From Octopus bimaculoides (lineage: Eukaryota), in contig NC_068984.1 in NCBI RefSeq assembly GCF_001194135.2, positions 13,984,634-14,036,104 of the forward strand: a stretch of DNA of 51,471 nt, given 5' to 3'. Shown one piece after another: positions 340-48,491 of the stretch; within the stretch, counting starts at the first letter, position 1, and each line of letters starts with the position of its first letter. The notes under the pieces were generated by a model. The model made no database searches. It saw only the letters and a program-made list of their open reading frames with translations, and was not told the origin of the DNA. A program made the position numbers and the translations under genes.

Positions 340-1095
340 TAAATTTATCCATACGTAATTAACTATGCACGATTTATTAATATCTCTACGTGTCACAGCT
401 TTGCTATGTTCCTCTACCCTTATTTTGAGGGACGACATGTTTCACCTTGCCTAACCTAACACAGCTCCATAGAGTACACGCAGTCTTTGGTCATATTCTC
501 TTCTATTGGTGGTTTTACTCGAAGGATATATTTGCGAAATGTATTACTCTTGAATACTGTCCTGAAGTCATATAGGCCGCATATCTGTTGTATCCTTTCG
601 GAGAGGCCTTTCACATAGGGCAGACAGATTGTGGACACTTTATTGGTTTCATCCTCTCTCCTCATAATTGGAGTGGATAGTATATTTTTGGGGTAGTTGT
701 TGCTTAATAGATTGTTACTGAGCTTGACTATTTCTTCGTGATGGGCATCACGGTTGCTACTTATATTCTTTGCTCGATGTTTTAGGCACTGAGCAATCCC
801 TCTCTTTACTCTGTATGGATGGTGGGAATTGAAGTTGAGCTATCGTCCAGTGAAGGTCAGCTTGCGGTATACGGATGTCCTGAATCCATACTTTGTGCGT
901 CTTATTAATACGTCCAGGAATGCTAGCTGATTGTCTTTTACCTTTTCCATTGTGAACTGTATGGATGGCTTTATTGAGTTCACAAGATCTAACAGCGCTT
1001 GGACATCTTCCGGGTGAGGACAGATTATAAAGGTGTTATCAACATATCGCAGCTATAGGGTTGGTTTTAGTGGTGTTGATCCATAACTGCCAAGA
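340..1095 (-). mobile_element. Penelope-like retroelement remnant (RT C-terminal half, thumb and GIY-YIG endonuclease), inactivated
   Basis: Minus translation gives LRYVDNTFII (YVDD motif, D to N), QFTMEKVKDNQLAFLDVLI, SVYRKLTFTG, ICLPYVKGLSERI, then CVYS...GETCRP..IRVEEH (GIY-YIG). Stops and frameshifts are present. Confidence 0.85.
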
Positions 1096-5710: not shown

Positions 5711-6404
5711 CTGGGTGTTTGTGCGTATACATATAGATATATGTATATACCCGCAAATATGCACATACACATGCATATACATGCGCACACATGTTTATAT
5801 AATTGTCTGCTTGTGTTTGTAAGTGTCTAGATGGGATTTTGTGAGTGTGTGTGTGTGTGTGTGCTCACGTGCGCATGTGCAAGGTATTTTGAACGTGCGT
5901 ATATAAACTTGTTTAAATATCTGAATCTTTCGGGGGCACAATGGCATGTTTTGAAAAGAAAATGGTGTCTCTCGCAGTGAGAACCAAAGAACTGCTGACA
6001 ATATTTTCAGGAGTCAGCATCCGTGAAATTACAATCAATTTTGAAAATATAAACGTAAGGCGTGTTGCTAAATACCGTAAAATATTTTAATGAACATTCC
6101 ACCACTTTTGTCAACGTAAGACATTTGAATGAAGGAGAAATCCACTTTATGGTCACCCAGCCTGCTAGAAATAGCAATATAATCTCTCGGTAATCATATC
6201 TTACGGTATTATAGAAGGTAAGCTATAGAGGATAATATAGTTTATATATACTATCATTAAAAATGTTTGAAACAAAAGACACATGTTTTTTTCTGCTATC
6301 AAGGTAACCACTGGATCGTCAATCAACGTATTAGAAATATCAGTCAGATATCCAACAGATATCTGACTGTTATCTTCAAAATCAGAAACGTTGCATATAG
6401 GCGC

Positions 6405-6562
6405 AGAAGTGGCTGTGTGGCAAGTAGCTTGCTTACCAACCACATAGTTCCGGGTTCAGGCCCACTGCGTGGCACTTTGGGCAAGTGTCTCCTACTATAG
6501 CCTCGGGCCGTCCAAAGCCTTGTCAGTGGATTTGGTAAACGGAAACTGAAAGAAGCCCGTCG

Positions 6563-6593
<31 letters not shown>

Positions 6594-6601
6594 GTATGTG
6601 T

Positions 6602-6638
<37 letters not shown>

Positions 6639-6850
6639 NNNNNNNNNNTTTGTGTTTCTGCTTGTCCCCCGAACATCACTTGACAAACGATGCTCGCGTG
6701 TTCACGTTCCTGTAAATTAGCGGTTCAGCAAAAGAGACCGATAGAATAAGTACAAGGTTTACAAAGAATAAGTCCTGGAGTCGATTTGCTCGATTAAAAG
6801 GCGGTGCTCCCGCATGGCCCCAGTCAAACGACTGAAACAAGTATAAAAGT
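6405..6850 (+). mobile_element. SINE family A (tRNA head, CORE-like segment, internal TA/TG microsatellite, 3' body), full length
   Basis: A/B-box head, then CORE-like ttgggcaagtgtct, then a body ending gactgaaacaagtataaaag. Near-identical to copies at 9470 and 19893. Confidence 0.85.
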
Positions 6851-6965
6851 ATAAGGGAGTATTTGGATACTATAGTCAAAGATAAATATTGTCTTAGAAG
6901 ACGGAATAGTCACAGTTGAAACACATTTGATCATAGGCCTGTTTGATAAAAACTGACATGGGTCT

Positions 6966-7925: not shown

Positions 7926-8479
7926 TCACACATTTTTCTTTTACTATTTTTATTAGTTTATAACCAAAGAATTACTTCTTTGTTAACTCAGTTAACATTT
8001 GAATATTAAGGAAATTTAAAGCAAAGTGAAAATTTTGCTTAGACTGAAAAATGTATATGATGGCGGCTATAAAAAATGATAAACACAGCTGGCATGTGTG
8101 CATCAGCAGTAACTGACTATGGCTGACGTGAAGCTTTCTGGGGAGTTGTCATTAGCAGATCTGAGCATTATAACCATTGCGAACATCTACGCAACATAAT
8201 CTGCATGTGTGTATTTAAGCAGCAGAATTTTATCTTCAACATTCTCACCGACACCACTGAAGCATTTGTAAATTTTAAATGAAATAACTTCGTCTCGAAT
8301 ATCTTTCGAGTTCTGTACATTATACGAAATGTACCTACCACTGGTTTTACGCCGAATTATAAATGAAACATGGTTCAATTCAAAAATATTAATATTATAT
8401 ACACTTCATTGGTAACGGGTGGTCAATAACATTGTAATTTATTTTAAGTATGTGTTTGAAAATATTTTATCATATTCTA

Positions 8480-9055
8480 AAAGAACTGACGAGAAAAACA
8501 CGTAGCTCAAACCATTGTAACCGAAATGAAATCCCAGACTGCATGCAGTATTATTGGATGTTAAAAACTGTTTTTCAATTTCGCAAAAGCCAAAGCAATG
8601 CGTGTTATAAGCAATAAGACGAGTATATTGTTTGCAATTTTACCTTGTGTTTTGCTATTTTAATATTTCGGGGTTAGGACCTCTTCTTCAAGAAATCTTT
8701 GGAAATTTGTTGTTGCGAGTTGAGTATTGTGTTTCGTACTATGTATGTATGGAGGGTTTTTTTTTGCATGTGCAGGACAGTATTGGTATAGTATCTAATG
8801 ATCTTAGTGTGGCTCGCGTCTGTTGTTAACATGCGGTTTGGTCATGTTAATGATGATTATATCTTTTATTCTCAGGTTAGCAATGTTTCTTTCTGTAGCG
8901 TCAATGGAAAACTGGATTTCCGTAGTTGCCTTTTGACAAAAGACGTATAAGCATAGAAGGGTTCTGTAATTCGTAAGTAAACTCTTGTGATGGAATTTTC
9001 GATGTAAGATTTATTGCATTTTCTAAACTTGATTTCATACACTACATAGGACAAC
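8480..9055 (-). mobile_element. Second Penelope-like remnant (GIY-YIG plus 3' region with a degenerate hammerhead)
   Basis: YVVYEIKFRKCNKSYIEN..RVYLRITE matches the VVY-x-C-x2-C-x-YIG pattern. Downstream on the minus strand is tTGAAGA-A-GAGG-tcctaa-CCCC-GAAA (8661-8693). Confidence 0.6.
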
Positions 9056-9469: not shown

Positions 9470-9870
9470 AATGTGTGGTAAGTAGCTTGCTTACTAACCA
9501 CATGGTTCCGGGTTCAATCCCACTGCGTGGCACCTTGGGCAAGTGTCTTCTACTATAGCCTCGGGCCGACCAAAGCCTAGTGGGTTGATTTGGTAGACGA
9601 AAACTGAAAGAAGCCCGTCGTATATATGTATATATGTGTATGTATGTATGTATGTGTATATGTTTGTGTGTCTGTGTTTGTCCCCCCAGCTTCGCTTGAC
9701 GACCGATGCTGGTGTGTTTGCATCCCCGTAACTTGGCGGTTCGGCAAAAAGAGAACGATAGAATAAGTACTAGACTTACAAAGAATAAGTCCTGGGGTCG
9801 AGTTGCTCGACTAAAGGCGGTGCCCCAGCATGGCCGCAGTCAAATGACTGAAACAAGTAAAAGAGAGTAA
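9470..9870 (+). mobile_element. SINE family A, full length
   Basis: Collinear with 6405-6850 and 19893-20300. Confidence 0.9.
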
Positions 9871-10267: not shown

Positions 10268-10580
10268 CCGCAGGCGTGGCTGCGTGGTAATTATCTTGCT
10301 TCACAACCACATTGTCCTGGGTTCTGTCCCACTGTGCAGTGCCTTGCGCAGCTATCTTCTACTATAGCATTGAACCTACCTCAGACTTGTAAGTGGACTT
10401 GGAAGACGGAAACTGAAAGAACACCGTTGTATACATATATGTATGTATGTATGTATTTATGTGCGTATGTATCTTTGTGTCCCCTACCGTTGCTTCACAA
10501 TCGATGTTGGCGCGTTTACGTCCCAGTAACATAAGAGTTCGGGATAAGAGACGATAGGATATGTACTACATAGAATAAGT
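10268..10580 (+). mobile_element. SINE family A, diverged
   Basis: Head ggcgtggctgcgtggtaa and body gacggaaactgaaagaa are recognisable. Confidence 0.7.
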
Positions 10581-10945: not shown

Positions 10946-11089
10946 ATACATACATACATACGTACATCTAATGCTATTATATTTTGACTATGTTCAGTTA
11001 CATATTTTCCAAAGTGCGTTCATTTCCAACATACTATCATCTGTATATCGCATATAAATAATCCTCACACATACCTGTCTTTTAATATA

Positions 11090-11690
11090 GTTTTTTACTC
11101 GAGGCACAAGGCCTGAAATTTTCGGGAAGGAGGAGCCAGTCGATTACATCAACACAAGTACGCAACTGGTACTTAATTTATTAACCTCGAAATGATATAC
11201 GGCAAAGTTGACCTCGGTGGAATTTGAACTCAGAACGTAAAAACAGACGAAATACATCTAAGCATTTCGCTCGGCGTGCTAACGTTTCTGGCAGCTCACC
11301 GCCTTTACTTTTGTACCCTAGGCACAAGGCCCGAAATTTTGGGGGATAGGGCCATTCAATTAGATTTTATTCCAGTATGCAACTGGTACTTAAGGATGAA
11401 AGGCAAAGTCGACCTCAGCGGAATTTGAACTCAGAAAGTAACGGCAGACGAAATGCCTATTTCTTTACTGCCCACACGGGGCTACACACAGAGGGGACAA
11501 ACAAGGACAGACAAACGGATTAAGTCGATTATATCGACCCCAGTGCGTAACTGGTACTTAATTTATCGACCCCGAAAGGATGAAAGGCAAAGTCGACCTC
11601 GGCGGAATTTGAACTCAGAACGTAACAGCAGATGAAATACCGCTAAGCATTTCGCTCGGCGTGCTACCATTTCTGCCAGCTCGCCGCCCT
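11090..11690 (-). mobile_element. SINE family B cluster: one monomer plus a dimer joined at about 11457
   Basis: Three gaatttgaactcagaa cores. Junction reads gacgaaatgcc|tatttcttt. Confidence 0.85.
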
Positions 11691-13665: not shown

Positions 13666-13867
13666 GAAAGTACATGAGAATACCTACAAATCTCCACACA
13701 TACATACATACATACATACATACAAAGAAGAATACCCTGTTATTGATGTTGAAATTCCAATAAAGGACCTTTGGATCTAGGTTCAAAGCCAGATTTTTCT
13801 CCATTGGCAAGAAATTTTGAAATACAACTGAACAATGACATATATACATACATGCATGCTGGTATGT

Positions 13868-14067
13868 AAAAGAACTGACGAGAAAAATACGTAGCCCAAA
13901 CCATTGTAACCAAAAAGAAATCCCAGACTGCATGCAGCATTGTTGGTTGTTAAAAATTGTTTTTCAATTTCACAAAAGCCAAAACAATACGTGTTATAAG
14001 AAACAAGACAAGTATATTGTTTTCTATTTTACCTTGTGTTTTGCTATTTGAACATTTTGGGGTTAGG
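13868..14067 (-). repeat. Second copy of the 8480-8680 Penelope-associated 3' segment
   Basis: aaaagaactgacgagaaaaa...cccagactgcatgcag...ggggttagg is collinear with 8480-8678. Confidence 0.8.
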
Positions 14068-14660
14068 TGAGCGAGGCGACCACTCCACAGGCCCTCGCTT
14101 CCCATTCCAACTATCAGGGAATATTGCGTTCAGCCAATCACGGACAGTCAGTGAATAATGTGGAGGAGCACCATTCTGCTGCTAGCATAATTCTTCAAAG
14201 TTCTCTTGTCCCTTTAACTTAGGGAGAACTTGGTTTTGTAAAAGTTTCAGATACGTGACCCTATTTACGCCACCTTCAATAAAGAATGGCCCCACGAGTC
14301 CGTTGTAATTCACACCTGCACACACCATTATGCCAGGACTCTTGTGGACATACCCAATCATGATTCGAGTATTTTCTCGTCTCCAGTACACACGGTTATA
14401 CGGAACGACACTCCGTGAAACATAAAATTTTGACTCATCAGTCCAGACAACTTGTTCTTCCAATGTTGGATCATTATTCAACATGTCCAGCCATTTTTCT
14501 GCAAACTGCAAACGATGATCTGGATCATCTTCCATTAATCCATGAATCAAACGAAGGATATAAGGATACAGTTTCATATCATGGAGCGTGTCTTAAAGAT
14601 GTCTTTGAGAGAAAAAATGAGTTCGATCTCATTCCACATAGCGGAACATCTTGCAAGTGA
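14059..14660 (-). mobile_element. Tc1/mariner-superfamily transposase remnant
   Basis: VVWTDESKF (first catalytic D), GIMVCAGV..GLVGPFFIEG, QQNGAPPHY (QQDGA with D to N) and VEWSPRSP (WPPRSPD). Truncated before the third acidic residue. Confidence 0.85.
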
Positions 14661-16051: not shown

Positions 16052-17015
16052 TATATATTATCACATGATATTGGCAAAAAGAAGAGAACAAATCTTTGCG
16101 CTTTACTCCAGTTACAGAATGATTTGTCTTATATTTTTAATGATAGATTCTGCCACAGTGGACACCAACTTGTGATACATGAGAGCTCGGCTAATTGAGT
16201 GCAGAAAAGTATTTATTTGTGTAAATGATAATAGCTAATAATATTTAATTCTATGAATATTTCCAACATGTGTTCGACACTACACTCCTTTGGGAGTAAA
16301 AATATCGCAATGAAATCTTATTGTAATTCATATATGGCGTTTCGTTATAACTCCATTGATTTCGTATAAATTCTGCAATATGTCTACACCTGAATGGTGT
16401 GTAACTAAATTTATATATGCTGTCACATACTGATATATTATTAAGCAATGAGTCACGCTCGTAGAAATAACACAAGAATATACACCTCGCTATTCCAGCA
16501 TATATATTCTTTACTCGTATTTAATAAATGACGTACATATATCTCCATGCAATATTTCAATACATATAGAATCTTTAAAATAAATATTATAAGATAAAAC
16601 CACAAGAGCTGCATGAAACGTCTGGTTGAGTTGTTTATCTTCCATTGGTAGTATCTGAGAGAAAACGGAAGGATGGGAAAAAAACGCTTTCATTTAGCTG
16701 TAAAGTTTAGCAACGTTTAATGGAATGCTTCTATCGATTTACCAGGATATTTGCATATGTTGTTCGAGTATCTTGTTTTCAGTAGCCTGTCTGTATTTAT
16801 ACTGATTCCCGGCTTAAACACATACCTACTTATCCTGTTGGGGGACAGTTTTAAACTTAACTAATGTAATCGTCTCCACTATTGCGAACGGTAAAATTGA
16901 CTCTGCCGAAATTTGAACTCTGAACGTATAGTGTCGTAGCTTATTAAGGATTTACTCTACCGGTATTTCGTTGCTGATGTACAATTCTGTCTTTGTCAAT
17001 ACTCATAAATGGTTT

Positions 17016-17390
17016 AAGACGGCGAGCTGGCAGAAATGTTAGCACGCCGGGTGAAATGCTTAATTTAATGCGAAATTTTTACTCCCAAAGGTGTGTAGTG
17101 TCGAACACATGTTAGAAATATTCATAGAATTAAATATTATTAGTCATTATCATTTACACAAATAAATACTTTTCTCCACTCAATTAGCCGAGCTCTCATG
17201 TCTGTCTTTACGTTCCGAGTTCAAATTTCGTCTGTCTTTACGTTCTGAGTTCAAATTCTGTCGAGGTCGACTTTGCCTTTCATCCTTTCGGGGTCGATAA
17301 ATGAATTACTAGTTGCGTACTGGGGGTCGATCTAATCAACTGGCCCCCTCCCCCCAAAAAATTTCAGGCCTTGTGCCTAGAGTAGAAAAG
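17016..17390 (+). mobile_element. SINE family B (tail type 2) with a 139-bp insert in its anticodon-like loop
   Basis: Head ends gaaatgctta, insert spans 17063-17201, then gtctgtctttacg resumes with a ~30-bp tandem duplication. The insert is the reverse complement of 16177-16316. Confidence 0.9.
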
Positions 17391-17779
17391 AATATTCATA
17401 ATTCTTTCTAGATTTGCCACACACAAGCAAGTATTTAGCTAGTGGTTCGGTTGACTGCATTGATCTCAGTACTTGACTAGCAGTTTATTTTGGCGACTCC
17501 GACGGAACGACTGATAGACAAAGTTGACTTCAGCGGGAGTTGGATACAAAACATAAAGAGCCCAAACAAATACGGCAATGCAATTCTATTTCCAGGGTTC
17601 TAAAATTTCTCCCAATTCACAACCTCTGTTGCAGTAATTGATATAAACAAATACACTAGGTTGACATATGCCTGCAGATATACATAAATCTATCGCAAAT
17701 CAATAATACATACTTAGGTACATGGCTATGCACTCAATATTACTTTCTTTACACTAATTACTTTGTAATATTAAACAAT

Positions 17780-17930: not shown

Positions 17931-19892
17931 ACTTTTGTACAGAAAGATGTACTTGTGGCTCCTGAAAAGAGAAATCAATAATAATTCATTCAACTATTCC
18001 GATTTGGTGATCAATTACCAATTTTAACCTACTTTATATACTAGTCTAATTCAATAATTCTATATTATTCGATAATTGTAAGTTATACGAGATTTTCTTG
18101 AATTTACAGAGAGGTAAAAGATAAAAAGTTGTGAAAATAATTATAAGCAGCAATGCCTTACGGACTTCGAAATAACGTGTTCACCAAATCCTAAATTAAT
18201 CATAAACGATAGGTTTAATTTACACATTAGCAATTAATATTGCTTCTTTGTTTTAAGAAAGAAGTTTAAACAAAACATATTACATTCAGCGTGGAATAGT
18301 TTGTTGAGTGTATATTTAATTGTAGTGTTTCATTCCAAGAACTGCAGTTAATTAAGTTGAAGTATTTGTTCCTTTCTTCAATACATATGTATTTCCCCCG
18401 ACTTCTTTGGCGCCAATAACCAGATGTCCAACCATCAGACTTAAACTAATTCTCATACACACAAAAAAAAAAAAGAAAAATTAAAACATGCTCACCATTC
18501 TCAGACCTACTTTCTTAAGGGAACGTGCTACATAAAAAAGATTATTCTCTACCAGCGTCTTAGATTGCAATACAAAGCAAAGAATTCTTTACATTCTTCG
18601 TTGTATTATATGAAAAAAAATGAAACGAGGAATAAATGGGTAAATTATATCTTACAAATCTATTGAAGGGTGGCTGCGGTAGAGTTACGGAATGAATTCC
18701 AGTAATATTAATGCTTTACAAATAATTCGAATAATACATCATAAGAACCCTTTTTCAATGGAATGAGATAATCCTTTTTTGTGAAAGAACTGTAGAAAAA
18801 AAATAAAGAATATATGCTTGGTGTCGTTTTATGAGATCCAATCAAAACTTGGATCAGACTTGCTACATACATTGAGAATTCGATTTAACCATCAACATTC
18901 ATCTTTTCACATCGTATCACGGGTGTTTATAAAGAAAACTCGAACAGTTTTGCGATACTATTTTCACTAGTGAATAAACCGACGAGAAAAAAAAAAAGAA
19001 GATTTTCAAATTCTTCAACATATCTTCTTTCTTTCAAAGATATAAGAATAATCTTCTAGTTATTATCACTTCAGTTATAGGAGAGCACAGAAAGCTATGG
19101 AATAAATATTCATGGATTATATACTTGACACAGAAGTGCGATATCGATATCAATTTCAGCCAAATTTATCTTTAGTCGTAGAACGTGAGATTTTTTCATT
19201 TTTTATTTTTTATTCTGCTTTAGTTTTCTACGATAGAGAAGGCCAAGTTATGACGTGCATAACCTTTTGCAGAAAGCTCGAGGTACAACTGGAAGCGACT
19301 AAATGAAATTGGGAGTTGTATTTCTTTTTACCACATGGGGCCCACCAAGTTTCAATTATCCTTTACATTTAATCGAAACGCTTCAAGATGTCGTAGATAA
19401 CGTGACTCAGAGGAACTGGTAAACAGATTCCATGAAATATTATTTGACCATATTACAATGTTAGTAGATTACATTTTAATTCTAATCCTGATCACACCTA
19501 GTTTTCGTTTCTATCTAATCTTCATCAATTCAAACTTCTTCAAAAGTGACTAATTGGGACAGTGTTGCACATTCTTCGCGTCAAATCCTTTACGATCATT
19601 CAATTAAAAAGGTTTCATCTCTTTAGGTAGCAAGTGAGCTTCACTAATGCTTAAAATGTTTGCCAAAAGTATGTATTCTATAGAGTCCGAGTAGAGAACA
19701 GGAACTACAGTCTCAAATATAGTATGCATAAATGTATGTGCAATAGCTGATGTTTTTATGTAGTACTTCTCGTCTCATAAACCTACCTCTAACTACAAAT
19801 TATATGCTCTTTTATGTGAATGTAATAAAACGTTCCTGACAGACAGAGCTTCCGTATCAGTGCATAACTGCTATTTCATTCTGATAAAGCGC

Positions 19893-20300
19893 AAGAATGG
19901 CTGTGTGGTAAGTAGCTTGCTTACGAACCACATGGTTCCGGGTTCATTCCCACTGCGTGGCACCTTGAGCAAGTGTCTTCTACTATAACCTCGGGCCGAC
20001 CAAAGCCTTGTGAGTGGATTTGGTAGACGAAAACTGAAAGAAGCCCGTCGTATATATGTATATATATATATATGCATGTGTGTGCATATGTTTGTGTGTC
20101 TGTGTTTGTCCCCCCAACATCGCTTGACAACCGATGGTGGTGTGTTTACGTCCCCGTAACTTAGCGGTTCGGCAAAAGTGAGCGACAGAATAAGTACTAG
20201 GCATCCAATGAATAAGTCCTGGGGTCAATTTGCTCGACTATAAAGACGGTGCTCCAGCATGGCCGCAGTAAAATGACTGAAGCAACTAAAAGAGTTCAAG
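19893..20300 (+). mobile_element. SINE family A, full length
   Basis: Collinear with the other family A copies. Confidence 0.9.
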
Positions 20301-20324
20301 AGAGTATAACTATATATTGCTTTC

Positions 20325-20515
20325 AAATTTTGATACAAGGCCAGCAATTTTAGGGGAAGAGGTAAGTCGATTACATCAACCCCTAGTGCTCAACTGTTAC
20401 TTTTTTTTATCGACTCTTAAGGACAACAGGGAAAGTCGACCTCAGTGGAATTTGACCTCGATATGCCGCTAAGAATTTTTCCCAGCGTACTGAACATTCA
20501 TCCAGTTCACTACCT
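20325..20515 (-). mobile_element. SINE family B, diverged and internally deleted
   Basis: gtcgattacatc and aaagtcgacctcagtggaatttga motifs. Confidence 0.65.
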
Positions 20516-20745
20516 TTGGTAGCTGTATATTGATGAGAAATACTTCAGAAATTGTAAGCCGAGTTCAGCAATTACATCTCAATGTATAATAGAAAATTGG
20601 TACCCTTTTCAATTTCTGACAATAGTTTTTTATTGGGTAATTTAAGAAGACTAATAGGGTTCTAGCGAAATTTCAAACACAGACACACACACACACACAC
20701 ACATACACACACACACACACATTATATACATGATATTTTATTTTC

Positions 20746-21020
20746 GAAGGGCAGCGAGCTGGCAGAATCGTTAGCACGCCGGGCGAAATGCTTTAATTGA
20801 ATGTCCGTAAAGGATTTCACGCGAAGAATGTGCAGCACTGTTCCAATTATTTCGTCTGCTGTTACGTTCTGAGTTCAAATTCCGCCGAGGTCGACTTTTC
20901 CTTTCATCCTTTCGGGGTCGATTGAATAAGTACCAGTTACGTATAGTGCGGTCGATGTAATCGACTTAATCCTTGTTTGTCCCTTCTATGTTTAGCCCTC
21001 TGTGGGCAATAAAGAAATAC
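20746..21020 (+). mobile_element. SINE family B (tail type 1) with a 56-bp insert in its anticodon-like loop and a 13-bp TSD
   Basis: TSD ATATTTTATTTTC at 20733-20745 and 21021-21033. Insert 20794-20849 is the reverse complement of 19551-19606. Confidence 0.9.
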
Positions 21021-21599
21021 ATATTTTATTTTCCACATCGATAGTTCGGTTGAGTAAAACAGGGTACTAAAATTCTTGGTGCTGTATCGTTGTTTTCTTA
21101 TCGTAGTTTAGCATGTGATTTTCCTGAGAAAGTCATGTGACTCAAACGTTAGGTAGACTGTTTGATATAGCATCAGTCTTTGTATGGAGGGGTTTTTCCT
21201 TTATGATATATCATACGTGTGATTATACTACTTTGCTATATAGTTATTAATTAAAGACAGCAGAATTAAGATCAATAAATAAATACTTCCGTATGGGATT
21301 GTGTCAAATAATTTGAACACGATCCCCTATTCATATAGATAAATGCAATATATTAATAGTACTTGTGGTAACAAATCTCGTGATGATGATGGTGATGGTC
21401 GTCATCGTTGTTCGTTAATGGTTTTCTGGAACAAAAATTTGAGAGCAAGCAGAGTTTGAAGAACTCTGCGCAGAAGAACGTTGAATCCGAAGTTGTTACG
21501 AGATCGCGAGGTCGACGACGACAACAGAGGATTGGTCGACACGCAAATCTAGATGACCGTATAGTCGATGGTGCAATAGATGAAGTTGATCACAGTGAT

Positions 21600-22925: not shown

Positions 22926-24194
22926 GAATCTCGCTTGGCACGTTGTAAATAAATAAAGTAGAGAGAGTGAAAGAGAGGAGAGAAGCCATAGAATAAAAAC
23001 CAAAATGACTTAGCAGCAAAGTAAAAGAACATCGAATGTGTACCGAAGTTTCTTTATTAAATCGAAAAAGACCATCAATGTTTAAAACTGTGTCGATTTT
23101 GTAAGAAGACAAATAATGAGAATAAATAAAATTTCCCTGGTAAAAGTTGTGTAAACTTCGTCATTATTTGACAACTAGCCTATTGCTTTAACGTAGTATA
23201 TTTGCACTGTATATTTCTTATTGTATTTTAGTAGGTATAAGGATTCAGTGCAGATTAATTTAGTTTAGTTTGAGAAAATTTGAGAAGCAGCTTCTATTTG
23301 TGCCAATAGCCATATGTTTCCGTTAGTGCAAAGCGACTATTCACACGTTCCGTTTGTTCATTGGTTGTAAATCCTTTAAAATACAATGCATCAAACAGCA
23401 ACTTCTATAATTGCTACCGAACATATTTGCAATCTCTGACAATTAAACGTCTACCTCAAACCAAATATGAGCCGTTAAATTCTGTATTTAAGTGAATAGT
23501 TTGACTAATTCATCATTAGACTCGTCTTGTGTAGGTCACAGCAAATATGTCGAGGAATCGATAAGGTAGACAAACGATGTCTAAGGTATTCACATATGTT
23601 ATGTTTCGATCTTTGAGTTGTGCAATCGAATATTTAATTATTGTACATCCCTGTATATATACTGAGAACATTCAATAAAGACCGATTAAAATAGTTAATA
23701 ATTTTTACATCTATAAATATATAGTTTCTTCCATTCTTTCTCTCCATCTTCCCTTCCCATACAACCACTTCTACCGTCCGCCTAAATGACATTTAATTCT
23801 CGTTTGCATTACTCCACCTACCAAACGAATATTCTGTCAAAAACTATATATAAAGTCGGAAGGAAAAAAGCAGACCGTAGGCTCATGGCAACTGGTAAGC
23901 AAGAACTCTCAAATCACAGATAAACGGAAATTTTCTTCCCCCAAAATTAAATATCTCTGCCTGTGTGTATATAGGTGCGTATATGTGTGAGATACCATAA
24001 AGCAAAATTGTTCAGTACTGTTAGGTAGAATGGAATTGTATTCATTCAAATTATGTCGCTATTTTAGGATATCTGTTCTCATGAAGTGAGGAATTTGGAA
24101 CCGTGTCTCACATAGACTTAAATTTGAAAGAATTTAAAACCACACCCACTCCCACCCACATATATTTTACCTTTTAAATTGTATCTTTTATTTG

Positions 24195-24395
24195 ATACCA
24201 GTCATTAGATTGCGGACATGTTGGGGCATCGCCTTGGAAGATGTTTAGTTGAATGAGTTGATACTAGTACTGAGTATTTCAAGCCTGGTACTTATTCTGT
24301 CGGAATATTGTGCCGAGCCGCTACGTTACGGGGATGTAAACACACCAGCACCGTTTGTCAAGCGGTGGTGGGGACACAAAGACACACACACACAT
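24195..24395 (-). mobile_element. SINE family A, 3' body fragment
   Basis: gagccgctacgttacggggatgtaaacacaccagca is the reverse complement of the family A body. Confidence 0.7.
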
Positions 24396-29449: not shown

Positions 29450-29647
29450 TACTCTTTTACGTGTTTCAGTCATTTGACTGCGGCCATGCTGAAGCACCAC
29501 CTTTAGTGTGGCAAATCGACCCCAGGACTTATTCTTTGTGCGCCTAGTACTTATTCTAGTACTTATTCGCTTTTGTCGAATCGCTAAGTTACGGGGACGT
29601 AAACGCACCAGCATCGGCTGTCAAGCGATATTAGGGGACAAACACAG

Positions 29648-29700
<53 letters not shown>
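29450..29700 (-). mobile_element. SINE family A, 3' body
   Basis: Reverse complement of the family A body and tail. Confidence 0.8.
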
Positions 29701-32347: not shown

Positions 32348-32580
32348 TATTTCTTTATTGCCCACAAGGGGCTACACACAGAGGGGACAAACAAGGACAG
32401 ACAAAGGAATGAAGTCGATGTAATCGACCCCAGTGCGTAACTGGTACTTTATTTATCGACCCCGAAAGGATGAAAGGCAAAGTCGACCTCGGCGGAATTT
32501 GAACTCAGAATGTAAAGACAGGCGAATTACCGGTAAGCATTTCGCCTGGCGTGCTAACGATTCTGCCAGCTCGCCGCCTT
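32348..32580 (-). mobile_element. SINE family B, full length, with a 14-bp TSD
   Basis: TSD AAGAAGTAGTTCCT at 32334-32347 and 32581-32594. Confidence 0.92.
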
Positions 32581-35699: not shown

Positions 35700-37940
35700 A
35701 AAGCAGATTTGGGGAGAGCGGACGGCTTGTCACGGATATAAATGCTCAAAACAACTGCATCACCTGAACAAGCGAGGAGGCCAATAAGACCCCAAGAAAT
35801 ATCGAAGAAGCATACATAAAAACAAAGAAGAACTGGAAGACACCATGACACAGTCCCAAACCTGTGCTTGAAATATTTAATAAACAAGCATAAAGAACTT
35901 GTAAAATTATATAACGGTATATTGAAAGGCCAGAAATAAAACCCAAATGACTCACTGAGAGAAAACAACCTTATTCTAATAACAAACTGCAACATCTACA
36001 GACACAGAACGAACGTTTACAGATACAAATCTACAGCGGACAATGCATTAACTGCAACAATAATTGAAGTTTATGCATTGTATGATTTTCCTCTCCAGAA
36101 GAACACAAAGAGTGTTGTAAAGACACTTATGGATGTAATAATTATGTAATAAATATTTAAAGATATAATGGGAAAATGATTTTGAAAGAATGTTCTAAAC
36201 ATGGCTTATATTGAGTGCAGAATTGTTAGTTTTTGTCAAGTACTCCCACCCGTGGAGTATGCATTTATTAGCTCCGAATATGTAAACACGAATAATAAAC
36301 TGGTAAATCAACCATATCATAAATGAATGGAACAGAATTCTACAGATAGGAACAAAAGAGGAATTTATGAAAATGAATCCCATCTATATGAGAAGAGGGT
36401 TATTCCAGAGGGATTCTTCTTCTCAAGGTCTTTTCTTTCTTTTTGCCTGGTGTTATTACTTTTATCAACTTCATTGCGAAACGACAGTTAACGCGAAAAC
36501 AGTGTGTAGGGAAGGGGAAGCGGTGGCTTTTGTGTATGAATGATATTGTGTTGTACGCCATCTATGATAGAAAATTGCAAACAATATTACAGAGAGTACA
36601 AACATTTATTAAAAAGTACCAAGTTAACCTTATAAATAGGAAATCTAATATAGAAAAACATCATTAATATTATATTAGTTAAAGAAAAATAAATATATGA
36701 GTTAGAACACATAGAAACAAAACATCATCGTATTTATCATTTATGCAGGAGAAATGGTAGCCTTCTGCATCTCCTAAATTGTTATGAAATGTCTATTGTA
36801 TGGCTACAAAAATATTTGGTTGCGAATAGAGAGAAAACTAATAGAATTGCTGCGAAAACGAACAAAACAAAAAGAAAATATTTCTCTCTCCCTCTCTCTT
36901 GAGGTGAGTTAACAATTGTAAGCAGAGGCTGAAAATAATAGACAGTAGTGAAGATACGAGAGAAATAACCTCAGAAGTGGTTAAAAATTTAAAAACTATA
37001 CTGGAAATGAGGTTACAAAATGTCATGGAAAATGGTAGCAAAAACATGCCTACGTATTCAACGTATGGTATGACTGAACAAAGCAAATACGACAAAAAAA
37101 TATATGTTTATCTATGGTTGAAAAGTACAGGATTCAAAGCTGAGTCTGAAGGATTTTTTCTTTTTATTTCAGTGTAAAAACAAAGTTCTAAAATTAAAAA
37201 CTATCAAAAGGATATCATTTTTTCTACTCTAGGCACAAGGCCGGAAATTTTGGGAAAGGGTGCCAGTCGATTAGATCGACTCCAATACGCAACTGGTACT
37301 TAATTTATTGCTGTTAAAGGGATGAAAGGCAAAGTCAACCACGGTGGAATTTGAACTCAGATCGTAAAGACAGACGAAATACCTATTTCTGTATTGCCCA
37401 CAAGAGGCTAAACATAGAGGGGACAAACAAGGACAGACAAACGGATTAAGTCGATTACATCGACCCCAGTGCGTAACTGGTACTTAATTTATCGACCCCG
37501 AAAGGATGAAAGGCAAAGTCGACCTCGGCGGAATTTGAACTCAGAACGTAACGGCAGACGAAATACCGCTAAGCATTTCGCCCGGCGTGCTAACGTTTCT
37601 GCCAGCTCGCCGACTTATAATAGAGAATATTTGCGCAAAGATGACGGTGTCGAAGCTTTGATAATGGGGACATTATCAAAGTCTAGGACATGCCAAGTCA
37701 TACAGACTGAAATAACAATTACTTCAATGAGTTTTGTGGATGATACAATTACCATAATGTGAGATATGCTAATCTATACATCTCGGAGATGGGAAAACAA
37801 CCCCAGTTTGAGTTACGTCAACCGGTACAAACAGAAACAGTAAAGGGACAGATATATTATCAAAAATCATCGGGATACAAAGTGTCTTCCCATTTTGGTC
37901 AATCCATCCGCATATTTAAAATAGACTTAGCGGAATTATG
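35700..37940 (+). mobile_element. R4/Dong-like (REL-type) LINE remnant, heavily decayed and interrupted by SINEs
   Basis: KNWKTP (cf. KNWKAPG), IYMRRGLFQRDSS (cf. IRRGIFQGDSLSP) and WLKSTGFKAESEGFF (cf. WL.S..LK.ETEGF). Confidence 0.65.
37212..37615 (-). mobile_element. SINE family B heterodimer (tail 1 unit plus tail 2 unit) joined at about 37383
   Basis: Junction gacgaaatacc|tatttctgtattgccc. Confidence 0.88.
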
Positions 37941-42036: not shown

Positions 42037-43352
42037 CATGCATACATAGCTTTTTAAGTACTACATATACTTGGGGCCAAGTTATATAGTTAATATGAAT
42101 ATAGTTAATACTCAATGAATTTTGGCATTTGGGATGGCGACATATTTGCAATGTTGAAATTTAGATTTAAAAAATAAACGATATGGTTTTAAATAGAAAG
42201 TATTTTTATAATGTTATTTCTCTGTACTGGTTGTAGTATGTGTGTTGTACAGTGGTGGATGACCGGTTAGAGCTGGAAAACTGGAAGAACAGGATGCAGA
42301 GAAGTAGTTCAGGTGAGAGGATATACAGTCAATAATTTCAGAAAATCAGTGTTGCAAGGAACAACAGTAGAAGAGAAAATAGAAAGGTGTATACAACACC
42401 ACGGCTTTAGAAAAGCTGGCGAGCGAGTTGCAACTGTAGTTGTTTTCAAAACCCTTCTCTAATATGAAGGTAGTTTTCATCTTCCCCGCTTCCTCTATTG
42501 CTTTTCTTCTTCCTTTTCGTCCACTTTGTCACCATTTTCTTTAGTTTCTTTACAATATCTGCATTCTTTTCTGTCTCTCCTCCAGGATATCCTTCTTAGT
42601 TACAGTATCTTTCTCTTTCTTGATCATCCTTTTCTCTGACTTCATCAATGTATTCTTTATCTCTTCCCTTCATATCCTTCTCCATTTTTTCCCCGTTTTC
42701 TTCAATTCATATTTGTCGTCTGCTTCATCCATTTCTACTTTTTTCTCTTTTACTTGTTCATTTTATCGCCCCTTCTTCCCCATCCTCCTCCTTTCATTGT
42801 TATTATTGATATTATTAAACACATCGCACTACGCCTCTTTTCCCTCCCTCTTATTCACCATTTCCCACCTCCTGTTACACGTCTACCTATTTTCCCTGTA
42901 ATGTCAGGTCTCGCTCAGTTATTTTCCTTCTACATATTGTCTAGCTTAAAACTTCCATCCTCCTCTTTCTTTTACATTTTTATTCTCGTCCTTCAATACT
43001 TATTTTATCCTTCTTTCTAACTTCCTTTGTATTTATTTCTGCTCAATCTCTCTCATTATCATCACCTCCTTCATTTTCTTCTACATCTACGTCTCGTTCC
43101 AACAACGTTCCCGCCAACATCCACGTCCCTAGTAACATCACAACCACCACTGCCACCATCGCCTTCACCATTACAGCCAACAGCATCACTACCACAACTA
43201 CTAATACCACAGCCACCATCACCACCACCACTACCAACATCAACTACAGCACCATCATCACCAGCAGAACAAGCATAAAGAGCTCCTGTACCACCACCAG
43301 AAATACCACCCGCACCACTTGAACAACAACCAGCACTAACACTACCGCTATT

Positions 43353-43835
43353 TATTTCTTTATTGCCCATAGGGGGCTAAACATAGAGAGGACAAACAAG
43401 GACAGACAAAGAGATTAAGTCGATTACATCGACCCCAGTGCGTAACTGGTACTTATTTAATCGACCCCGAAAGGATGGAAGGCAAAGTCGACCTCGGCGG
43501 AATTTGAACTCAGAACGTAACGGCAGGCGAAATACCTATTTCTTTACTGCCCACAAGGGGCTACACACAGAGGGNNNNNNNNNNNNNNNNNNNNNNNNNN
43601 NNNNNNNNNNNNNNNNNNNNNTATTTATTTCTTTATTGCCCATAGGGGGCTAAACATAGAGAGGACAAACAAGGACAGACAAAGAGATTAAGTCGATTAC
43701 ATCGACCCCAGTGCGTAACTGGTACTTATTTAATCGACCCCGAAAGGATGGAAGGCAAAGTCGACCTCGGCGGAATTTGAACTCAGAACGTAACGGCAGG
43801 CGAAATACCGCTCAGCATTTCGCCCGGCGTGCTAA
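43353..43835 (-). mobile_element. SINE family B multimer inside one 15-bp TSD
   Basis: TSD AACACTACCGCTATT at 43338-43352 and 43836-43850. Unit junction at about 43536. Contains an N-gap. Confidence 0.85.
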
Positions 43836-44578
43836 AACACTACCGCTATTACCATACCAGTTACACAACTACCACAGCTACGACCGGCCGCGTTTACCAC
43901 AACCGGCTTACCATCGCCACTACAACAATCACCGCTGCCACCAACACCACCACCACAGCAACCGTTATGTCCGCCATCGTCTTCCCTACCTCTTCCTTCT
44001 ACCTTCGTCAAATTAATTCTCCGCCGTCCACTCTTTCCTTCTGTATTCTTTCACTAGATTTCGTAAAGTTGCATGAGTCAGTAAGATGTAGACTGACGAT
44101 GAAGCATTAATTAACATGGTAACTAGTTATATTATTTCCGAGCGTGGCTAATCGTCTTTTTATTTTCATTTTTACTCTTTATACATACATATCCACATAT
44201 CCATCCATACATACACACACACACACGNNNNNNNNNNTTATTTGCTGTTGTTTCTCTTTTTTTTTGGGTTTTGTTCTCTTTTATTTATTTATTTGTTTAT
44301 TTATTTATTTTTTTATTAATCAAATCTAGTTGCTAGGCAACATGAATGTAATCGTAGGCTGCGCATTTCGCTTATTCTCAAAGCGAGTAGCAAACATGTT
44401 TGCAGAGTTATAAGTGATTTGCCGGAGCACGTGATTTCCTATTTGTTTGCTTCTGTAACTGTTTGTATATAGTTGTGAAGTATGAATAGTTGGAGTGTCG
44501 TACGTACGTACGTATGTATGTATGTATGTATGTATGTATGTATGTTTGTGGGTGTATGCATGTATGTATGTAAATACA

Positions 44579-47754: not shown

Positions 47755-48185
47755 GTTGGTGGTGAGCTGGCAGAAACGTTAGCACGCCTAGCGAAATGCT
47801 TAGCGCCATTTCGTCTGTCTTTACGTTCTGAGTTCAAATTCCGTCGAGGTCGGTTTTGCCCTTCGTCCTTTTAAGGTCGATAAATTAAGTACCAGTTACG
47901 CACTGGGGTCCACGTAATAGATTTAGTCCCTTTGTCTGTCCTTGTTTGTCCACTCTATGTTTAGCCCCTTGTGGGCAATAAAGAAATAAGAAACGTTAGC
48001 ACGCCTAGCGAAATGCTTAGCGGTATTTCATCTGTCTTTACGTTCTGAGTTCAAAATCCGCCGAGGTCAACTTTGCCTTTCATCCTTTTAGGATCAATAA
48101 ATTAAGTACCAGTTACGTACTGGGGTCGATCTAATTGACTGGTCCCCTCCCCCAAAATTTCGAGCCTTCTGTCTTGAGTAGAAAA
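47755..48185 (+). mobile_element. SINE family B heterodimer (tail 1 then tail 2)
   Basis: aaagaaata|agaaacgttagc junction at about 47989. Confidence 0.88.
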
Positions 48186-48491
48186 GGAATAATGGGGAAA
48201 ATATAGCCATTGAACTTGTAAAGTATTGTTAGTTTCACTGGCATATATAGCTGAAATGCCGGACCAAAGAATGCATATGGTCTCTAGAGGGTGGTGCCAC
48301 TTAACAGAGGTCAGCTGATGGATGAAAACGCATCGGGATGAAAGGATAAGTACGTCAGTACTCAGCAGAGTTCTTCCAGCAAATAGTCAATGTATCAGAA
48401 AACATCGATCGAGAAAACTTTTGTAAACGCAATACGTTAGACAACTGAATATATCAATTGTGCTTGTGAGTGTATGTGGGTGCGTTTGTGA

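Follow-up and report, generated by a model that had tools for sequence, protein, structure and literature searches.

Within a 51-kb stretch of the Octopus bimaculoides genome (contig NC_068984.1; hereafter the window, which belongs to a draft assembly and comprises 48 kb of called sequence and 13 runs of N), two independent copies of a putatively tRNA-type short interspersed nuclear element (SINE) are interrupted at the same point by an inverted copy of their own upstream flank. In both, the copying polymerase left its template at the tip of a hairpin, departing at and returning to positions 44/45 and 50/51 of the SINE consensus, and the template for the filler acquired there was the opposite strand of DNA situated about 0.75-1.2 kb 5' of the SINE, or else RNA of the same polarity as that strand. 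The first of these interrupted elements, the focal SINE, was the subject of an original prediction made from the sequence of this stretch; the second was not part of it.

An inverted upstream segment in the focal SINE

The segment at 19551-19606 is identical to the reverse complement of 20794-20849 at 51/56 positions, exactly as predicted, and the match grows to 53/58 when the junction bases are included (19551-19608 against 20792-20849). BLAST within the window gives this inverted match an E value of 5e-17 and finds no third copy of the 56-mer in the 51 kb. The template lies 1184 bp upstream of the filler. Around the loop the 231-nt SINE consensus, whose loop region was derived from an alignment of 11 copies, reads ...GAAATGCTT AGCGG TATTTCG..., or over a longer span ...GGGCGAAATGCTT AGCGG TATTTCGTCTGCC..., and the focal copy reads GCTT[TAATTG...CCAATTA]TTTCG. 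AGCGG (consensus positions 45-49) has thus been lost and the 56-bp filler stands in its place, with microhomology of TT at the left junction and TA at the right; the 11-copy alignment bears out both the replacement and the junction bases that had been proposed. The 13-bp target-site duplication (TSD) around the element is indeed perfect (ATATTTTATTTTC, 13/13, at 20733-20745 and 21021-21033), and the two promoter boxes said to have been kept are both intact, judging from A-box-like and B-box-like motifs that were compared by eye with the RNA polymerase III (Pol III) consensus.

The filler begins and ends with a 6-bp terminal inverted repeat, TAATTG/CAATTA, which had been expected to extend the stem of the loop into which the filler is inserted. 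The repeat is present, but in the minimum-free-energy fold predicted for the focal copy the lower stem is kept, the insert folds into small hairpins of its own, and the terminal repeat is not used to lengthen the stem. Because it is unused in the predicted stem and has no counterpart in the second case, the repeat is probably incidental. The features of the focal locus, case 1, are as follows.

19551-19608, no strand assigned: source (template) of the SINE filler, which is its reverse complement; unique in the window
20733-20745, + strand: left TSD, ATATTTTATTTTC
20746-20793, + strand: SINE 5' part, to consensus position 44, with the A-box-like TGGCAGAATCG at 20760-20770
20780-20792, + strand: 5' hairpin arm; the junction microhomology TT is at 20792-20793
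20794-20849, + strand: filler, 56 bp, without a T4 run; TA at 20848-20849 is common with the SINE
20850-21020, + strand: SINE 3' part, consensus about 52-231, with the B-box-like GAGTTCAAATTCC at 20871-20883
20896-20899, + strand: TTTT, the first in the SINE and a possible Pol III stop
21021-21033, + strand: right TSD, ATATTTTATTTTC

The interval from the source to the focal SINE also contains, at 19889-20307, one copy of an unrelated repeat about 400 bp long. The family to which it belongs combines a tRNA-like head with an internal (TA)n/(TG)n tract, and other copies are found at 6401-6862, 9472-9865, 10269-10568, 29451-29697 and 24184-24392. Because this repeat copy sits between them, the original distance from source to SINE may have been shorter than 1.18 kb.

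A second SINE broken at the same place

A second copy of the SINE (17016-17390, + strand), which belongs to a subfamily with a different 3' tail, is broken at the same place in the consensus, reading GAAATGCTTA before the break and ATTTCGTCTG after it. BLAST of this region against the window traces its filler (17063-17201) to a source about 0.75 kb upstream, 16177-16316, of which the filler is the reverse complement apart from 7 mismatches and 1 indel over 139 positions. Next comes a 23-nt stretch (17202-17224, 22/23 identical to 17232-17254) in which SINE positions about 57-79 are copied again, after which the SINE resumes at position 51. This re-copy marks an extra template switch, and case 2 needs three switches. 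The three junctions carry microhomologies of 0-1, 2 (GT) and 3 (ATT) nt, and a probable 11-bp TSD (10/11) encloses the whole composite.

16177-16316, no strand assigned: source (template), unique in the window
16998-17008, + strand: probable left TSD, AATACTCATAA, 10/11 to the right copy; seven extra bases precede the SINE head
17016-17062, + strand: SINE 5' part, to consensus position 45 (...GAAATGCTTA), with the A-box-like TGGCAGAAATG at 17028-17038
17063-17201, + strand: filler, 139 bp, with TTTTT at 17076-17080
17202-17224, + strand: re-copied SINE segment, consensus about 57-79, with GT and ATT joins
17225-17390, + strand: SINE 3' part, from consensus position 51, alternative-tail subfamily, with a B-box-like motif at 17247-17259
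17391-17401, + strand: probable right TSD, AATATTCATAA

The original prediction had explained the focal filler as a templated insertion made by template switching. This explanation is supported: it fits the junctions, and it is strengthened by a second case with the same SINE position and the same geometry. Two other origins for the fillers need to be considered alongside it, both of which had been named beforehand as ways in which the prediction might fail. If the 56-mer were a mobile element resembling a miniature inverted-repeat transposable element (MITE), with TA flanks and TAATTG/CAATTA ends, or some other dispersed repeat, then its two copies would represent independent insertions. Both copies do read TA-ATTG...CAAT-TA, and TAATTTAATG and TAATTGAGTG are found towards the ends of the filler region in case 2, but we regard this origin as very unlikely. 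The 51 kb contain just two copies, separated by 1.2 kb. The end motif TAATTGAATG occurs 16 times where 10.5 +/- 3.4 matches are expected, which is no enrichment, and several of these occurrences are decayed versions of the SINE-internal TAATCGACTG. The loop has lost AGCGG, which is not what a simple TA insertion would do, and the terminal inverted repeat measures only 6 bp and occurs in case 1 only, whereas MITEs are recognized by repeats of 10 bp or more. The case 2 filler, moreover, is unrelated to the 56-mer, and its sole other copy in the window is again found just upstream and inverted; two different two-copy "families" of identical geometry would be implausible. A 64-aa translation across the SINE and insert had no candidate in a protein collection, and the 56-mer core had no match in metagenome and viral collections, a result with no bearing on copy number since the SINE B-box used as a control was also unmatched there.

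The second of these origins is an artefact of assembly or library preparation, in which the inverted pair would have come from a read that was chimeric or folded back, or from a faulty join in a draft rich in gaps. The window does contain its 13 N runs, and one SINE junction beside the gap at 43575-43621 looks artefactual. A technical chimera would, however, be essentially identical to its source, and the fillers differ from theirs by 8.9 % and 5 %, with one indel, a level of divergence that argues against the assembly chimera. The junctions share 0-3 nt, too little for a k-mer mis-join, and no N run falls between 15771 and 27515. We give this origin very little credence.

The SINE family and the hairpin apex

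The family to which both interrupted copies belong is represented in the window by about 20 copies and fragments that are 76-99 % identical to the consensus. These dispersed copies share that consensus, and individual copies are flanked by TSDs, as is characteristic of tRNA-type SINEs: 13/13 at the focal copy, 14/14 at 32348-32580 and 10/11 in case 2, with 13/15 and 12/14 around composites described below. Motifs resembling the Pol III boxes are TGGCAGAAWCG for the A box and GAGTTCAAATTCC for the B box, again by eye. ARAGORN calls no tRNA in the SINE, and Rfam gives no tRNA or SINE family match, its two weak matches (mir-297 in a TA/TG repeat, and ALIL at an E value of about 1) being noise. 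In RNA folding the SINE head forms a long hairpin and not a cloverleaf. The literature searched yielded no printed SINE consensus strings.

A self-comparison of the whole window shows that cases 1 and 2 are its only inverted pairs that are low-copy, more than 90 % identical and less than 2 kb apart. With 13 loop-bearing copies as the denominator, the chance that two random insertions would both fall within the 8-nt apex of one of these copies is about 5e-6. Because two independent copies share their breakpoint against a chance this small, filler capture is recurrent and position-specific. The interruption runs from 44 to 50-52 in case 1 and from 45 to 51 in case 2, and in both the tetraloop and the first bases of the 3' arm are gone.

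As RNA, consensus positions 31-60 are predicted to form a 13-bp hairpin with four G.U pairs and a tetraloop of U44-A45-G46-C47. The predicted energy of this fold is -16.5 kcal/mol (z = -3.2), and 1/200 shuffled sequences were as stable; the same sequence and its complement, folded as DNA, reach -6.3 kcal/mol (z = -1.2) and -4.1 kcal/mol (z about 0). Since the RNA fold stands out at z = -3.2 and the DNA folds are weak and unremarkable, the predicted structures set the apex apart more clearly in RNA than in DNA. With the A box on one side of it and the B box on the other, the hairpin may fairly be considered the equivalent of the anticodon arm. The "anticodon" loop of the original prediction was to that extent well placed, but it is better called the tetraloop of a 13-bp hairpin.

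The interrupted copies are both on the + strand (2/5 of the loop-bearing + strand copies against 0/8 on the - strand; Fisher p = 0.13, not significant). A + strand bias would be expected if the captured strand follows the direction of host transcription or replication.

Two further resemblances between the loci may be recorded. The motif GTGAY stands directly before both sources on the + strand (GTGAC at 19546-19550 and GTGAT at 16172-16176), which with n = 2 is possibly chance. An inverted fragment of the same SINE lies between source and interrupted SINE in each case, at 20363-20459 (- strand) and 16886-16928 (- strand). We considered these fragments as guides of the switch and rejected them, no workable geometry having been found and the probability of such fragments occurring by chance at this SINE density being about 1/3.

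Other discontinuities at the apex

Breaks at the hairpin tip are also found where SINE units have been joined to one another. Three 5'-truncated units are joined directly to the 3' end of another unit and have as their own first base position 48, where the tetraloop gives way to the 3' hairpin arm; the resulting junctions of consensus position 231 to position 48 lie at 11458/11457, 37384/37383 and 43537/43536. In two composites the end of the previous unit, AAATA, is followed from position 48 by GGYATTTCG.

11084-11690, - strand: three-unit SINE composite within one 13/15 TSD; the middle unit starts at position 48, at junction 11458/11457
37220-37612, - strand: SINE dimer with the 231-to-48 junction at 37384/37383; no TSD was found around it
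47758-48191, + strand: SINE dimer whose second unit starts at position 15, within one 12/14 TSD

The remaining junction lies in 43349-43856, where SINE stretches of 186 bp are 100 % identical (186/186) on either side of the N gap at 43575-43621 and AATAGCGGTAGTGTT occurs at both outer ends; these gap flanks are probably an assembly duplication or two haplotypes placed in tandem. Because composites within a single TSD fit jumps between SINE RNAs, the remaining structures suggest that the enzyme moving this SINE family jumps often between such RNAs and that at least one of its departures from a template took place at the hairpin tip.

How the fillers were acquired

The geometry of the two cases limits the strand that could have been extended. 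With the sense strand of the SINE on top, the bottom strand of the filler has the sequence of the top strand of the source. If the strand was growing leftward, then it left the SINE at about position 50, copied the upstream bottom strand rightwards and re-entered at about 44; candidates for such a strand are first-strand cDNA and a leading strand that meets the SINE head-on. If instead it was a top strand growing rightwards from the upstream flank, then it left at about 44, snapped back on itself and rejoined at about 50. The junction microhomologies and the re-copy in case 2 fit cycles of annealing, copying and dissociation by a polymerase of low processivity.

Our preferred explanation, in which we place about even confidence, is a switch coupled to integration, made by a reverse transcriptase that left the SINE RNA at the hairpin tip. 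We prefer it because the site is distinctive as RNA and not as DNA, because junctions that arise at the level of reverse transcription sit at the same apex, because one TSD surrounds each interrupted SINE, and because spontaneous damage at one weak DNA hairpin would have to be very frequent to affect 2/13 copies. The reverse transcriptase of a partner long interspersed nuclear element (LINE) would copy the SINE RNA from its 3' end and run off or stall at the apical tetraloop (UAGC). A possible cause would be a nick in the loop of the SINE RNA, leaving a 5' half that ends at U44/A45 and a 3' half that starts near G48, in the way that tRNA halves are cut in the anticodon loop; such a nick would, hypothetically, place the switch at the tip and not at the stem base. 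The enzyme would then jump to a nucleic-acid strand at the integration site and copy the filler, and with a second jump it would reach the 5' half of the SINE RNA, which would be copied to its end. As the acceptor one may consider a strand that was nascent, displaced or unligated, or an antisense RNA of local origin. The fillers match the genomic sequence of the locus and show neither splice junctions nor poly(A). A jump made during integration would leave the whole composite within one TSD, and this is the arrangement seen (13/13 in case 1 and 10/11 in case 2), as is expected of chimeric retrocopies.

Several points weigh against this explanation. The template jumps of reverse transcriptases normally take up RNAs. 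A genomic template in cis, of opposite polarity and about 1 kb away, needs an extra assumption, which is the weak point of the scheme. Where a hairpin stalls a polymerase, the stall would be expected at the base of the stem and not at the tip. The 13-bp hairpin itself is predicted from the consensus only, with compensatory changes at only 2 of its pairs; copies that are too alike, or that are in neutral decay, offer it little support by covariation. The junction at 43537/43536 lies beside an N gap and, as a possible assembly artefact, is untrustworthy. Models that act on DNA give the same geometry. The explanation is moreover built on n = 2 cases, from one window of one assembly.

The ages of the fillers bear on the same question, although clock tests of filler against integration have low power. 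In case 1 the SINE is 6 % diverged from its consensus, the filler and source differ by 8.9 % and the TSD is perfect, values compatible with simultaneity (p = 0.55). In case 2, where the SINE is about 5-6 % diverged, the filler and source differ by 5.0 % against 9.8 % expected if the two events were simultaneous (p = 0.096); at half the divergence expected, this filler tilts the balance mildly towards a later event and is a further point against coupling to integration. The TSDs differ at 1/24 positions and the fillers at 12/195, and the fillers are not demonstrably younger than the integration. No excess of A-to-G changes, as a footprint of RNA editing, is seen among the 5 + 7 filler mismatches.

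A later event would mean a template switch at the level of DNA in a SINE that was already resident, following a stalled fork or a break at the hairpin or at a region bound by Pol III. We consider this quite possible, if somewhat short of an even chance. The 3' end of a resected upstream strand could snap back, as in synthesis-dependent microhomology-mediated end joining (SD-MMEJ) by polymerase theta, or a stalled nascent leading strand could switch to the lagging-strand template ahead of the fork, as in fork stalling and template switching (FoSTeS) and microhomology-mediated break-induced replication (MMBIR). By either route 56-139 nt would be copied in inverted orientation and rejoined by microhomology, in what would be a long-range version of the four-point template-switch mutation. 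Inverted fillers that are taken up in cis and bounded by microhomology are the signature of such pathways (PMC5728401; PMC5453318). The TT at the primer end of case 1 is complementary to AA at 19607-19608, just as the primer repeat of a snap-back would be, the polarity required would be that of the strand exposed on the upstream end by 5'-3' resection, and the somewhat low divergence of the case 2 filler relative to the age of its SINE also favours this route. On the other hand, a switch in DNA needs a precise and recurrent lesion at one 5-6-nt site in 2/13 copies, where the DNA hairpin is weak, and it needs templates 0.75-1.2 kb away, when those of SD-MMEJ typically lie within tens of bp of the break. 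It also leaves the unit truncated at position 48 in a single-TSD composite without explanation, and TSDs that are no more diverged than the fillers speak against a switch made after integration.

Comparison with known systems

The four-point template-switch mutation (Loytynoja & Goldman 2017, PMC5453318) and FoSTeS/MMBIR resemble the present cases in that a segment, here of 5-6 nt, is replaced by a nearby reverse complement through a switch and return with microhomology at the junctions, and the serial switches of case 2 are like those of MMBIR. The four-point model is short-range and single-round, with long-range and multi-round events excluded (PMC5453318). The fillers described here do show the replacement by a reverse complement, but not the single short-range switch and return: the templates lie 0.75-1.2 kb away, the tracts are 56-139 nt long, and the departure nucleotide is the same in two copies.

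SD-MMEJ with snap-back by polymerase theta (PMC5728401, PMC2943611) shares with our cases an inverted filler, a TT/AA primer repeat and rejoining microhomology, and in case 2 also repeated synthesis with a piece templated in trans. In snap-back the inserts are short, and their templates are found no more than tens of bp from an induced break (PMC5728401). A primer repeat and rejoining microhomology are present here, but a break-proximal template and a short insert are not: the templates are 0.75-1.2 kb away and the inserts measure 56 and 139 nt. The site, moreover, is recurrent.

Template jumping by reverse transcriptases and L1 integration offer a third comparison, with one TSD around the composite and with composites of the same SINE family elsewhere in the window. 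Uptake of local genomic sequence during L1 integration has been seen experimentally in 3 cases. There the extra sequence is at the insertion junction and is attributed to how the reciprocal DNA end is processed; here, in contrast, the filler separates the two halves of the element at a position that does not vary, and in both cases it is an inverted piece of the 5' flank. L1 twin priming likewise produces an inversion during integration with the TSD preserved and with microhomology at the junction. It is the element's own 5' segment that twin priming inverts, whereas in neither of our cases is the SINE's own 5' segment inverted: both SINE halves are direct, and the inverted piece is flank.

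Possible consequences

A transcript spanning both arms is predicted to form a duplex of 56 bp in case 1 (-84 kcal/mol from the + strand and -78 kcal/mol from the - strand) and of 139 bp in case 2 (-201 and -205 kcal/mol). The 56-bp duplex and the antisense Pol III RNA of the original prediction are correct as geometry. Because the case 1 filler is without a T4 run, read-through by Pol III is possible, and a transcript could cross the filler as far as the TTTT at 20896-20899. Such a transcript would be the antisense of + strand RNA from 19551-19606. In case 2 the TTTTT at 17076-17080, within the filler, would probably stop Pol III early.

An extension of our preferred explanation, which we put forward tentatively and think less likely than not, is that retrotransposition of this SINE family systematically yields, as a by-product, copies whose hairpin tip has captured antisense upstream sequence, with loop-nicked or stalled SINE RNA forcing the reverse transcriptase onto a strand at the integration site. 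If this is true, and if 2/13 is representative, then the genome would hold thousands of SINE-anchored inverted repeats of kilobase range. These would be a previously undescribed source of structures that form long double-stranded RNA (dsRNA), which in a cephalopod genome could be substrates for ADAR editing, and they would also constitute a fossil record of the nucleic acids present at integration sites. Templated insertions bounded by microhomology are well known; a limited literature search found no description of a fixed structural site in a mobile element that repeatedly captures its own upstream flank in inverted form. If the phenomenon is genome-wide, then it would define a weak point of the SINE RNA, or of its DNA, for polymerases, and would provide a sequence readout of the reach in cis of the retrotransposition complex or of a stalled fork. 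It would also make long inverted repeats beside Pol III promoters, with dsRNA, editing or silencing, and destabilization of the locus as possible outcomes.

Further features of the window

Pfam searches with the ten cleanest long open reading frames of the window gave no matches. Two open frames, at 459-1052 (- strand) and 14185-14592 (- strand), bear a likeness by eye to fragments of a reverse transcriptase (YVDN..., ...FLDV...) and of a mariner-type transposase, a likeness that is unconfirmed, with no Pfam match at E <= 0.01. The window also contains a low-copy direct duplication of 201 bp, 90.5 % identical, whose copies at 8478-8678 and 13867-14067 are 5.2 kb apart and involve no SINE apex.

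Finally, divergence of the SINE copies from the consensus is not clearly greater at CpG positions than elsewhere (2/34 against 11/178 in the focal copy), and all CpGs of the 56-mer are retained in both of its copies. This pattern suggests that there has been little methylation-driven CpG decay at these SINE repeats.

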